From the IMG/VR virus record IMGVR_UViG_3300036766_002289, positions 124,001 through 188,000 of that record: 64,000 bases of DNA; one strand, written 5' to 3'. Positions 10,750 through 46,858 of the stretch are shown here, piece after piece; position 1 is the stretch's first letter, and every line of letters begins with the position of its first letter. The translations under genes were made by a program, and so were the position numbers. The notes beneath the pieces are model-generated. The model made no database searches. It had not been told where the DNA came from and was given only the letters and a program-made list of their open reading frames with translations.

Positions 10750-11601
10750 ATGATTTCTGTACTCTGCCACCTTTACCATCATCACCTTTGGAATGAAATT
10801 AGTACCTCAATATCCCGTATTAAAACAGATAAACAAGTATACGTTAATTTGACTAATGATAAACCATACGAGCAGATTAGCAAAGAGATTAAAAGCAAAT
10901 TTCCAAACGCAAAAATTTCAGTTAGTCCAAATCAAGGTAAGGATATTGGTGGTAATTTAAGACTAATAGACAAATGGATGGGGGACGGTTCCCCTGGAGA
11001 ACTATTAATAGTCTGTCACGGGAAAAACAGAGATGGAGGTTGGAGAAAGGAACTATTTGCTCCATTATTCAGTAATTACGTTCCATATCTTTTTAAGAAT
11101 AATACTAGATTGGGTATGGTTGGCAATAAGAGATGGCTTTATCATCGTTCCCAAGACGTAAATTCAAATTTTTACAATGAATATTGTAAAAGATTTGGAT
11201 TTAGTGATACTAGTATGCATTTCATAGCAGGTACGATGTTTTGCGTGCGAAGTAGTATTTTCAAAGAGTTTTTTTCAAGGTTTAATGCAGCTAATATAGC
11301 CAATGAGTTAGAACATGGTGATTGCAGAGAGCCTTCTAGGACTCACTCTTGGGAGAGATTATACGGTGGAATTATTACGCATTCTCACTACCTAATCAAG
11401 CCAATTGAATATTATGAAGATGTAGACCTTGGTATTTTACAGTCTTTTAATGAAGAATATTACTTGGTTAACAATCCAGACGTTAATAACGTAGTTTTGT
11501 CCAATGATTATTCATCTGGGTTAATTCATTATATTAAATACGGTAGAAAGGAGGGTAGATTAATGACTAAACCTAGAAATAAAGCTCTATTGATGCTATA
11601 A
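10750..11601 (+). CDS. Rhamnan synthesis F (RgpF)-like protein with C-terminal NPDV module
   Basis: CHLYH, NQGKDIG, FIAGTMF, HSWERL. Confidence 0.75.
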   Translation: MISVLCHLYHHHLWNEISTSISRIKTDKQVYVNLTNDKPYEQISKEIKSKFPNAKISVSPNQGKDIGGNLRLIDKWMGDGSPGELLIVCHGKNRDGGWRKELFAPLFSNYVPYLFKNNTRLGMVGNKRWLYHRSQDVNSNFYNEYCKRFGFSDTSMHFIAGTMFCVRSSIFKEFFSRFNAANIANELEHGDCREPSRTHSWERLYGGIITHSHYLIKPIEYYEDVDLGILQSFNEEYYLVNNPDVNNVVLSNDYSSGLIHYIKYGRKEGRLMTKPRNKALLML

Positions 11602-11607
11602 TATTTT

Positions 11608-12438
11608 ATGTCATTGTGTATATTTTCGCATTACGCTGGTTTAGTATTTAATGAAACTTTTTACTTGGAAAATAATCCAGATGTAAAACAGGCTGTTCAG
11701 AATAGAAAATTTTCTAGTGGTCATAGACATTTCTCAGAGTATGGGAAACATGAAAACAGAAAGCATGAATTCCTACCATCAGTCACTCCTAAGTATATCA
11801 ATGTATATTTGAAAGAGCTTTCCAAGCACTTTGGCAAGGTGATACTTGTCAGCAATGCCAAAGTAGAAACAAATTTTCCTGTGGTTATTGTGGAAAACGA
11901 GGGCTATGATTTCGGCATGTGGAAAAAAGTTCTGAAAAACGTTGGTGCAGAAAACAGGATAGCATTAGTGAATGATAGTGTAGTTTTGTTTAATACTTTG
12001 GACCACATATTTAAATGGGCCGAATCTAATAAGTCAGATTTTTGGGGTTTAACTGATTCCAGGGAATTGGCGTATCATATACAGAGTTATTTTATGGTTT
12101 TTGAAATGAAAGCAGTAAGTTTACTCCTAGAATTTTTCAAGAATTATGTCATTGATAATGTTAGAAAGCGAACCATAATGAATGGCGAGTTGGGCTTATC
12201 CAGATTTATGATGAATAATGGTATGAATCTCAAGGCGTTTGTGAGTATGGGAGGCGTTCTTAATCCTCATTTTCATCATTGGAAACAATTGATTGAATCT
12301 GGTGTGCCAATTATTAAGAAGAAAATTGTGATTGGTCACAAAGATTTACCTAGAGTTGATTATAATAATTGGCATCTGGTGGTGCAGAAACACATGAAGT
12401 GGGAATATAATGATATTTTTAGCTATATAGGTGTATAA
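11608..12438 (+). CDS. RgpF-like protein with N-terminal NPDV module
   Basis: ENEGYDFGMW, LVNDS, FWGLT, HIQSYF, GELGLS. Confidence 0.75.
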   Translation: MSLCIFSHYAGLVFNETFYLENNPDVKQAVQNRKFSSGHRHFSEYGKHENRKHEFLPSVTPKYINVYLKELSKHFGKVILVSNAKVETNFPVVIVENEGYDFGMWKKVLKNVGAENRIALVNDSVVLFNTLDHIFKWAESNKSDFWGLTDSRELAYHIQSYFMVFEMKAVSLLLEFFKNYVIDNVRKRTIMNGELGLSRFMMNNGMNLKAFVSMGGVLNPHFHHWKQLIESGVPIIKKKIVIGHKDLPRVDYNNWHLVVQKHMKWEYNDIFSYIGV

Positions 12439-18158: not shown

Positions 18159-18173
18159 ATAGCTTAGTTGTAC
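18159..18173 (+). promoter_or_regulatory. Conserved ATAGCTTAGTTGTAC box, copy 1
   Basis: Recurs at 35155 and 56325; lies 12 nt upstream of the tRNA. Confidence 0.55.
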
Positions 18174-44222: not shown

Positions 44223-44849
44223 ATGGCTATTCTCAAGAAAAAAGATAATGTGAAAACACCAGCACAGATGCGTGTTCTAATTGCCAAGGATGTACTGGAG
44301 ATGCTACCGCTCTTGCATCCAGTGCAGGGAACGTACCTATTGCTAAAAGAATCACTCCGTAAAGACTTACGTGACGCCAAGACAAATATGAAATTTGTTG
44401 CTAGTAATTGTAAAGTGTGCGCTCTGGGTGCCTGTTTCCTTGGATGGGTTCATCATTTCAATACGCTTTCCATACTTGATCTTAATTGCACCGACCATGA
44501 GCAAATGATTAGATTGATGAGCGATGTTTTTGATGCAGGTCAACTCGAAATGATTGAGGCAGCGTTTGAGGGATTTGATAGGTTAGCTAGTTATGTAACG
44601 CGCTACCCCGATCTTCATGACCGCCTTCGCGCCATCATGGAAAACATCGTTGTAAATAAAGGAACTTTTGTCCCATTGGATAATCAAATGGAAGCTTCAT
44701 GCACTTGGGGTGACGGCCCTGATGTACTGCTAAGCATCAACGGCACACATTATGATTTAACTGCTGACGAGGCAATACGGTTATCTGTGGATTTAAGTCT
44801 AGCAGCAGCATGGGCAAAAGAGCAGAATGAACAAACACTTTGCCGATAA
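44223..44849 (+). CDS. Hypothetical phage protein
   Basis: ORF track; CALGAC motif. Confidence 0.55.
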   Translation: MAILKKKDNVKTPAQMRVLIAKDVLEMLPLLHPVQGTYLLLKESLRKDLRDAKTNMKFVASNCKVCALGACFLGWVHHFNTLSILDLNCTDHEQMIRLMSDVFDAGQLEMIEAAFEGFDRLASYVTRYPDLHDRLRAIMENIVVNKGTFVPLDNQMEASCTWGDGPDVLLSINGTHYDLTADEAIRLSVDLSLAAAWAKEQNEQTLCR

Positions 44850-45120
44850 ACTGTTGTCTGGGGAAACCGTTGAATGTCGTCCGCGTGGTAGCTCCATGAC
44901 CCCTAAGATTAAGTCTGGCCAATTGATAACAATATCACCAGACCTATCTGAACTACATAAGGGTGACGTAGTGTTCTGTAAGGTTAAAGGCAAGTATTTC
45001 GTTCATCTGTTATCTGCTATCCAAGGTGAACGTTATCAGATAAGTAATAACCACAACCATGTTAATGGCTGGATTGGCAAAAATTCTATGTTTGGTAAAG
45101 TAGTAAAGGTATCAGACTAA
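44827..45120 (+). CDS. S24/S26 peptidase-like small protein
   Basis: GSSMTP, GDVVFC, VHLL. Confidence 0.65.
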   Translation: MNKHFADKLLSGETVECRPRGSSMTPKIKSGQLITISPDLSELHKGDVVFCKVKGKYFVHLLSAIQGERYQISNNHNHVNGWIGKNSMFGKVVKVSD

Positions 45121-45490: not shown

Positions 45491-45862
45491 ATGAAAGACC
45501 TTGTGATGGAAGTCCAGAATTTTTTTAACGGTATGAACAATGTAACCTTACTTGGTGGCCAAGTTCTGGCCCAAGTAAAAGTTGGTGATGAAGTTGAAAT
45601 CGTCACCACTAGATCGGGCCGCAAAACCCGAATAGTTGGTATTAAACGATTCAACCAAAGTCTAGACTGTGTTAATGGTGGTGTGGCTGGACTTCTATTT
45701 GAAGGAATAGGAGACTTAGATTTTAGGACTACTCCACTACCCCCAAATCCTTATAATCCCAAGACTCAATTAGAAGAATATCTCAAGTTCAGCAGCAAAG
45801 ACAACGATGCCGAAAACGTAAGGATCGTTAGGGCACCTCAACCTGTTGCTTGGCAGTTTTGA
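45491..45862 (+). CDS. Stand-alone EF-Tu domain II-like protein
   Basis: GQVLAQVKVGDEVEIV...KTRIVGIKRFNQSLD...GLLFEGI resembles EF-Tu GRVERGIIKVGEEVEIV...TGVEMFRKLLD...GVLLRGI. Confidence 0.7.
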   Translation: MKDLVMEVQNFFNGMNNVTLLGGQVLAQVKVGDEVEIVTTRSGRKTRIVGIKRFNQSLDCVNGGVAGLLFEGIGDLDFRTTPLPPNPYNPKTQLEEYLKFSSKDNDAENVRIVRAPQPVAWQF

Positions 45863-46081: not shown

Positions 46082-46295
46082 AATTCTAGAAGAAGCCTTA
46101 ATGTGGTTGGGAATTTGGGCAATTATTTTTAATATCTTTTTTGCTGTGCCCTTATTCTTTTATTTAAGAAGCATATCAAGGGAGAAGTTTATATGCATCA
46201 TGTATATTCTGCACCATTGGTTGCAGAATTTTGATTGTGGTTATGGGCAAGATGAAGTGTTGAGGGATTTAGCAAAGGTGGAAAAACATGTCTAA
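46074..46295 (+). CDS. Small membrane protein
   Basis: Coupled ORF; hydrophobic segment. Confidence 0.5.
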
Positions 46296-46506
46296 GGAAG
46301 ATGTTATTCAGGCAGAAGGTAAAGTCTTAGAATCTTTGCCTAATGCACAGTTCAAAGTGAAGCTGGATACTGGTTATGAAATCATAGCCCATATATCTGG
46401 CAGGATGCGAAAGAACTTTATCAAGGTGATCCCAGGCGACGTTGTAGAAGTCGAGATTTCACCTTATGATTTGACCAAGGGTCGAATCAGCCGTAGAACA
46501 AGATGA
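46288..46506 (+). CDS. infA: Translation initiation factor IF-1
   Basis: [20 protein letters not shown]...[28 protein letters not shown]. Confidence 0.96.
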
Positions 46507-46512
46507 TTGTAT

Positions 46513-46585
46513 GCTCTTGTAGCTCAATGGGAGAGCGACGAACTCTAAATTCGATTGGTTGAGGGTTCGAATCCCTCCAAGAGCG
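46513..46585 (+). tRNA. Amber suppressor tRNA (anticodon CTA)
   Basis: Acceptor GCTCTTG/CAAGAGC+G, D arm GCTC-AATGGGA-GAGC, loop CT-CTA-AA (46543-46549), T arm GAGGG-TTCGAAT-CCCTC. Confidence 0.88.
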
Positions 46586-46858
46586 TTATGAAAACTGCAA
46601 TATTATTGCTGTACATTATAGGCAGCTTGTGCTTCCTAACAGGCAGTATATTATCCCTTATAATTCATTTTAGAGAATAAACATGGACGAAGGACTTAAA
46701 AAGATCATGCATCTTGCCCTTGTGTCGGGCATCATTACTCTATATGCTGTATTTTATCCATTACACGCATTGATTACATTAATTCTAACATGCTGTGTAT
46801 TGTTCATCATGAGGAATGGGTAAAATTCTACTTGACTTAACAATTCAAGGTGATTATC

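Follow-up and report, generated by a model that had tools for sequence, protein, structure and literature searches.

Conserved leader UAG codons in two gene families of standard-code large phages that may be gated by an amber suppressor tRNA

We analyzed a 64,000-nucleotide stretch of DNA (the window), which corresponds to positions 124001-188000 of a single 390,039-bp IMG/VR virus record from a sediment metagenome (CheckV completeness 98%). ARAGORN detected two tRNAs in the window, one of which, at 46512-46586, has the anticodon CUA. The Rfam tRNA model (RF00005) matched 46513-46585 (+) at 66.6 bits, compared to a gathering score of 29, and covered model positions 1-71 of 71. The cloverleaf contains a perfect 7-bp acceptor stem, a D-loop (AATGGGA) with G18G19, a canonical anticodon loop (C-U-C-U-A-A-A, with the anticodon at 46545-46547), a 4-bp anticodon stem topped by an A27.A43 mismatch, a T-loop of TTCGAAT, and discriminator G73, with no encoded CCA. 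The preliminary description correctly reported this architecture, but its placement of A at position 20 was a numbering slip, as position 20 is G and position 21 is A. Its suggestion that the tRNA body is Arg-like is only partly right. Although the nearest sense tRNAs are Arg(UCU), these come only after other suppressors, and A20 and C35, likely the major ArgRS determinants, are absent (position 20 is G, or C in the relative described below, and position 35 is U). ARAGORN labels the gene tRNA-Pyl, but this follows from the anticodon only. The presence of G18G19, the canonical T-loop, a variable region of 5-6 nt, and an anticodon stem of 4-5 bp do not fit the atypical body expected for tRNA-Pyl, with its short D-loop lacking G18G19, 3-nt variable loop, and 6-bp anticodon stem. 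The tRNA lies 7 nt downstream of infA (translation initiation factor IF-1; 46288-46506 (+); Pfam PF01176, 86 bits).

The genome has 39% G+C, 48 tRNA genes, mostly clustered at 21.7-74.5 kb, RIIA, and a T4-type large terminase. To determine if UAG is reassigned, we compared coding densities under different codes. Greedy ORF density was 0.905 under code 11, 0.901 with TAG as sense, and 0.902 with TGA as sense, and TAG ended 131 of 660 ORFs. Thus, the preliminary description was correct that the code is not globally reassigned. We found no RF1/RF2 gene and no GlnRS/GluRS gene, and detected only a sub-threshold class II aaRS-like fragment.

We next asked if the tRNA is conserved. The closest public relative is LR756511.1, a 595,163-bp uncultured phage whose TerL is 67% identical. 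This phage also uses the standard code (density 0.914; TAG ends 19% of ORFs) and has 63 tRNAs and a tmRNA. Its region at 155-204 kb is colinear with window 24-56 kb and carries a tRNA(CUA) at the same place, just after infA. The two tRNAs differ by paired, compensatory changes in the acceptor stem (GCTCTTG/CAAGAGC compared to GCTTGCG/CGCAAGC), the anticodon stem (CGAA/TTCG compared to CAGT/ACTG), and the T stem, while both retain the anticodon loop, the A27.A43 mismatch, and G73. This is the signature of a tRNA under selection. Two IMG/VR relatives found through TerL (210 kb and 341 kb) lack the infA-tRNA region and have no CUA tRNA, but as they are 42% and 68% complete, they are uninformative. 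An exact-pattern search for the tRNA in viral contigs, a search with the neighboring 199-aa protein, and a megablast of 12 kb against GenBank phages found nothing.

Among 267 phage tRNAs, the nearest neighbors of the window tRNA are other CUA suppressors. These include the suppressors of cultured Pectobacterium phage CBB and Aeromonas phage Akh-2, and of the code-15 phage Phass-1. An unpaired 27:43 position is commoner among the suppressors (10 of 28) than among other phage tRNAs (23 of 233; Fisher's test, p = 7e-4, although the sequences are not independent). Experiments cited in a 2026 paper show that such an unpinned pair makes a CUA tRNA read UAG more efficiently (PMC13092985).

To identify genes that could be targets of the tRNA, we searched for reading frames interrupted by TAG. 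Same-frame ORF pairs split by a single stop were not enriched for TAG (22, compared to 41 for TAA and 40 for TGA). Our first screens for TAGs spanned by homology were swamped by off-frame translations of conserved DNA. When only the best-supported frame per region was kept, the five TAG-split pairs all hit different genes in relatives. TAG-ending genes were also not enriched for nearby backup stops, as the median distance to the next TAA or TGA was 23 codons, compared to 13 for other genes. Other candidates for conserved coding sequence upstream of the first start after a TAG proved to be a frameshifted NAPRTase-like gene at genome 56.4-57.3 kb, an ATT start at about genome 368.0 kb on the minus strand, and BLAST alignments running into a promoter-like motif that translates as S-C-T.

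The exception was a gene at 52524 to which the preliminary description had pointed as a possible read-through target. Here, a Shine-Dalgarno (SD) sequence, AAGGAG (52513-52518 (+)), lies 5 nt upstream of a leader (52524-52541 (+)) that encodes M-D-E-F-L-amber, with the TAG at 52539-52541 followed by A. The body of the gene (52542-52886 (+)) contains 114 codons plus TAA, and the first canonical start within it, a GTG at 52602, lies 20 codons into the conserved domain. The LR756511 orthologue has the same arrangement, with AAGGAGA preceding ATG ACT CAC TAG. The residues after the TAG (Y.Y.F.R.DLP) are conserved between the two, while the GTG positions do not align. Moreover, homologues without any stop begin MKR, MKP, or MTP immediately before the same motif, which fixes the true N-terminus. 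The coding region therefore begins upstream of the GTG, and the only canonical, SD-served start is the ATG in front of the TAG.

The encoded protein resembles peptidyl-tRNA hydrolase 2 (PTH2). The window copy matched PF01981 at 20.1 bits, which is below the cut-off of 23, while the LR756511 orthologue scored 28 bits. A profile of 21 homologues hit solved PTH2 enzymes (24bt_A, E = 3e-7; 2zv3_A, E = 2e-6). An AlphaFold2 model built on 20 homologues (pLDDT 93.3) matched the PTH2 structures 3erj, 2zv3, 1q7s, 1wn2, and 1xty with Foldseek probability 1.0 and TM 0.66-0.70. Thus, the gene is predicted to encode a PTH2-fold protein of a divergent phage clade.

We determined whether the leader stop is a trait of this family. 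A profile-guided scan of IMG/VR found 35 loci, 30 of them distinct. Of these 30, 16 unambiguously contain ATG, 0-3 further codons, a stop, and then 2-12 codons before the conserved domain, with no ATG in between. Fifteen of the 16 use TAG and one uses TGA. Additional loci have longer or GTG-initiated leaders (L122, L124, and L132), and some, as well as LR756501, carry a second in-frame TAG (L118, L120, L123, L125, and L137). As the columns aligned to these internal TAGs fall in a variable loop (E, N, or Q in relatives), they were not decisive as to the inserted amino acid, and the statement in the preliminary description that the residue cannot be read from the sequence stands. The base after the leader stop is a purine in 15 of 16 cases, a context that probably favors suppression over release (Bossi 1983; Miller and Albertini 1983).

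Within 2 kb on either side, a suppressor tRNA was present in 14 of the 30 distinct loci. All are CUA except two: L133, the locus whose leader stop is TGA, has a tRNA(UCA), while L148 has a tRNA(UUA) and an ordinary start. There was no mismatch between leader stop codon and anticodon. Suppressors make up 14 of the 59 tRNAs in these loci, compared to 1 of 48 in the genome containing the window and 1 of 63 in LR756511. However, only 8 of the 16 gated loci have a suppressor within 2 kb, although the rest may have it further away, as in the window (6 kb). In addition, several homologues lie beside a suppressor tRNA yet have an ordinary start (L140, L149, L151, and the XacN1 fusion form). The linkage therefore does not depend on the gate alone.

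The same leader is present in cultured phages. Using tblastn against GenBank phages, we found the gene in 36 records. The leader reads MAQ-TAG in Pectobacterium phage CBB, with a tRNA(CUA) 3.7 kb downstream, and MAQ-TAG in Cronobacter phage GAP32, with an annotated "Sup-tRNA" 3.1 kb downstream. It reads MTH-TAG in Serratia phage BF, MSH-TAG in Yersinia phage fHe-Yen9-04, and MTH-TAG in Erwinia phage pEa_SNUABM_19, each with a tRNA(CUA). Salmonella phage Arash has ML-TAG, with a cta tRNA 1 kb downstream that is annotated as Phe, and Acinetobacter phage ME3 has MT-TAG, with a CTA tRNA 0.5 kb upstream. Ralstonia phage RsoM2USA has ML-TAG but no suppressor within 5 kb, and LR756501, a 735-kb uncultured phage, has MS-TAG with two cta tRNAs 2.4 kb downstream. 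In contrast, RaK2 has an ordinary start and no match to the CBB-type suppressor, and in XacN1, Xoo-sp13, and CM1 the domain is fused behind another domain. In GenBank, the gated genes are either cut to the C-terminal part (CBB_406, GAP32_397, and Arash gp84c) or not annotated (BF, fHe-Yen9-04, pEa_SNUABM_19, and RsoM2USA). PHROG 34073, which is 77 positions long, covers only the C-terminal half of the protein and appears to be built from the truncated form.

To test if other genes have this architecture, we scanned the whole genome for an SD, ATG, at most 9 codons, a stop, and then a coding ORF of at least 70 codons with no start in the first 8 codons. This returned two places, both with TAG, and none with TAA or TGA. 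In LR756511, the scan returned the PTH2-like gene and one weak TAA case. The second place, at genome 55824-56069 and outside the window, reads AAAGGAG-aataac-ATG CTC TAG and encodes a 78-aa protein. Its homologues are highly conserved (58% mean column identity; invariant HFNK and TKGSLKF) and were found in 56 IMG/VR loci, 42 of them distinct. Of these 42, 35 have an ATG-(0-5 codons)-TAG leader, and the base after the stop is a purine in 32 of 35. Thirty of the 73 tRNAs in these loci are CUA suppressors, often directly abutting the gene. Cultured Rhizobium phage RHph_I1_18 carries the gene (MSEFM-TAG, unannotated) with tRNA-Pyl(cta) 33 nt downstream. In Atu_ph07 and Phosso, the domain is fused to a longer ORF that lies two genes downstream of a canonical PTH2 gene, so the two families are also neighbors of each other. 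The model of the 78-aa protein is a small all-beta fold (pLDDT 93.3) with no PDB counterpart, matching only uncharacterized AFDB clusters, and we found no Pfam or PHROG family.

A model that we favor with reasonable confidence is that the tRNA is a functional amber suppressor, kept by a standard-code giant phage to open a translational gate on a very small set of its own genes. In this genome, the gate is an in-frame UAG placed 1-5 codons after an SD-served AUG in the PTH2-like gene and the 78-aa protein gene. Without charged suppressor tRNA, the ribosome would release a 2-5-residue peptide at little cost, while in its presence the full protein would be made, such that output follows suppressor activity. 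As our evidence is from DNA sequence alone, that read-through occurs is inferred. The non-conserved position of the UAG, together with the varied discriminator bases of the linked suppressors (G, A, or U), suggests that the identity of the inserted residue does not matter. Of the two possibilities in the preliminary description, conditional read-through of selected genes is well supported, while an early stage of recoding is not supported.

Why a hydrolase would be gated is far less certain. Our preferred reading, which is tentative and rests on the enzyme family name alone, is a coupled clean-up or feedback loop. Hydrolase supply would scale with suppression, either to recycle peptidyl-tRNA produced by read-through, drop-off, and ribosome rescue, or to deacylate the suppressor and thus cap read-through. 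This would let a phage whose own genes often end in UAG tolerate a suppressor. Nonetheless, since about 130 phage ORFs end in TAG without enrichment of backup stops, an efficient suppressor would extend many proteins, and how these genes are spared is unexplained. More broadly, it is slightly more likely than not that large standard-code phages carry a previously unrecognized control module, consisting of a dedicated suppressor tRNA and a small regulon with the cognate stop at codons 2-6, that works as a sensor-effector loop to set or buffer stop-codon read-through in the infected cell. Such a module would explain the suppressor tRNAs of jumbo phages such as XacN1, GAP32, and CBB, and would offer a plausible starting point from which wider recoding could evolve.

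We considered other explanations, all of which we regard as unlikely. One is that the ATG-x-TAG unit is an upstream mini-ORF that terminates normally, with the hydrolase made by reinitiation or from a non-canonical start just downstream and the suppressor tRNA unrelated to it. This genome does use non-AUG starts, as an ATT and an ATC sit behind good SD sequences where relatives have ATG, and mini-ORFs of 2-5 codons can be regulatory, as is probably the case for the lambda bar minigenes and leader peptides. However, in the window copy there is no in-frame ATG, GTG, TTG, ATT, ATC, ATA, or CTG in the first 15 codons after the TAG, where the conserved domain already begins (ATT is at codon 16 and GTG at codon 20), and LR756511 has only a CTG at codon 6. 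The SD is also positioned for the upstream ATG. Moreover, the stop is TAG in 50 of 51 gated loci, and the only TGA sits next to a tRNA(UCA), while a plain terminating uORF should use all three stops freely. The linkage to suppressor tRNAs would also be left unexplained.

It is similarly doubtful that the tRNA mainly acts on the host or on defense, by causing read-through of host UAG-terminated mRNAs, rescuing amber mutations, or replacing tRNAs cut by host anticodon nucleases, with the gated genes incidental. The 48 tRNAs and several translation genes (IF-1 and an EF-Tu domain-2-like protein) are consistent with remodeling of translation, and some phage tRNAs may evade tRNA-targeting defenses. 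However, a CUA tRNA replaces no sense tRNA, nothing in our data bears on host mRNAs, the host being unknown, and this idea does not explain why two gene families next to the tRNA carry a cognate stop at codons 2-6. An early stage of TAG reassignment toward code 15 is slightly less likely still. Related suppressors occur in code-15 phages such as Phass-1, some homologous hydrolase genes carry a second in-frame TAG, and a gradual route through standard-code relatives has been proposed (Borges et al., 10.1101/2021.08.26.457843). Nevertheless, TAG is not depleted and coding density does not rise with TAG as sense in either this genome or LR756511, no TAG apart from those in the two leader-gated genes is spanned by homology, and the two-gene device is stable across phages as distant as Rak2-like enterobacterial phages and this sediment phage. 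Finally, that the anticodon is an assembly or sequencing error of an Arg(UCU) tRNA, or the gene a decaying pseudo-tRNA, is refuted by the LR756511 orthologue, despite the similarity to Arg(UCU) tRNAs and the stem mismatch; the same anticodon loop and mismatch also occur in dozens of other phage loci.

Suppressor tRNAs have been noted in cultured jumbo phages for more than a decade without a known client. The XacN1 study reported two CUA suppressors, but in silico read-through of the 18 amber stops found no targets (PMC5852040), and the Atu_ph07 study listed a UCA suppressor and peptidyl-tRNA hydrolases without connecting them (PMC6102473). These studies looked past the 3′ ends of genes, while the targets proposed here are at 5′ ends and are truncated or missing in GenBank annotations. 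A 2026 jumbo-phage survey treats suppressors only as tools of alternative codes (PMC13037316), and the Borges et al. preprint does not contain the word hydrolase. In open-access papers and bioRxiv preprints, we found nothing describing the leader stop, although prior description elsewhere cannot be excluded.

In stop-codon-recoded phages, such as code-15 crAss-like, Lak, and Phass-1 phages, a tRNA(CUA) is likewise proposed to switch on genes that carry in-frame TAG in a host using the standard code (Borges et al.; PMC9523058), and the Phass-1 tRNA-Sup matches the window tRNA at 81% over 60 nt. However, in those phages 26-71% of genes carry in-frame stops and TAG is largely abandoned as a terminator, while here TAG ends a fifth of the genes and only two genes carry one amber codon each, at the extreme 5′ end. 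Compared to the archaeal and eukaryotic PTH2 enzymes (Pth2/Bit1; PDB 3erj, 2zv3, 1q7s, and 1xty), the phage proteins match in predicted fold (TM about 0.7) but form a divergent clade with its own invariant set (V21, Q22, H25, A26, E29, E74, and T82). The leader also recalls E. coli RF2 (prfB), in which decoding of an early in-frame UGA in a translation-factor gene probably sets the amount of that factor. However, prfB appears to use a +1 frameshift and to sense its own product, while here the frame is unchanged, the sensor would be a dedicated tRNA, and feedback by the hydrolase is only conjecture. Engineered circuits, such as the feed-forward "leak dampener" (PMC7969014), also place a UAG near the start of a coding sequence so that protein is made only when a suppressor tRNA is present, and the arrangement described here would be a natural, widespread counterpart of these synthetic circuits.

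An 11-mer, TTAGTTGTACC, occurs 109 times genome-wide with at most one mismatch, with 102 of the copies on the + strand and a dense concentration at genome 244-317 kb. Within the window, it is found at positions 18164, 29399, 35160, and 56330. The motif sits in front of many small ORFs and of the tRNA-Met at window 18186, and is probably a phage-specific promoter. Because the motif contains TAG, it supplies many of the TAG "stops" in that region and mimics conserved S-C-T residues in BLAST comparisons.

Examination of the PTH2-like homologues revealed that some, namely those at loci L118, L120, L123, L125, and L137 and in LR756501 (locus L172), carry a second in-frame TAG about 40 codons in. 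This TAG falls in a variable loop where relatives have E, N, or Q. Directly upstream of the gated gene in our genome is a 351-aa minus-strand ORF with repeated Cys-motif modules, which is probably a homing endonuclease. The neighborhood (window 44827-45120, 45491-45862, 49925-50398, and 51435-52490 (-)) also includes a peptidase S24-like protein, a small protein with EF-Tu domain 2 (30.4 bits, just over the cut-off), and a weak match to a dual-specificity phosphatase.

Outside the window, two genes (at genome about 368,012 on the minus strand and about 372,396 on the + strand; locus L019) appear to start at ATT and ATC behind good Shine-Dalgarno sequences, where relatives have ATG at the aligned position. 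These apparent starts are of interest in a phage that encodes its own IF-1. Just past the end of the window, at genome 188409-188840 (locus L174), a 204-aa open frame gave a match to the class II aminoacyl-tRNA synthetase core (Asp/Asn/Lys type), although this match was below threshold (22.7 bits, cut-off 25).

At window 10750-12438, two adjacent same-frame ORFs (10750-11601 and 11608-12438), which are separated by a TAA, both match one 585-codon ORF of LR756511 (residues 33-256 and 313-556), indicating a gene split or fusion. At genome 56.4-57.3 kb (locus L003), outside the window, a nicotinate phosphoribosyltransferase-like gene is split between two frames near 56,690, while the LR756511 homologue is one 627-codon ORF. 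This split represents either a frameshift or an assembly error.

The 48 tRNAs of our genome (mostly clustered at genome 21.7-74.5 kb) include no Ser or Tyr and only two Leu. In the partial relatives G001 and G002, the clusters consist almost only of class II tRNAs (Ser, Leu, Tyr), while LR756511 has both kinds of cluster at separate places. Our contig may lack the class II cluster despite its estimated completeness of 98%. At 414.1-414.7 kb (L086:1078-1653, minus strand) and 341280-341632, LR756511 encodes a short 191-aa release-factor-like protein, which has an RF-1 (GGQ) domain and only the last part of the PCRF domain, and also a tmRNA. Our genome has no release-factor homologue, and ARAGORN, run with its tmRNA option, did not find a tmRNA.

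Lastly, we compared the gated genes with the existing annotation of cultured phages. In GenBank records KU574722, JN882285, KY630187, LT960551, MW879342, OQ632216, MG752970, and MN988519, these genes are either truncated to an internal start or not annotated. PHROG 34073 seems to model the truncated form, and in phage Arash, the cta tRNA is annotated as tRNA-Phe.
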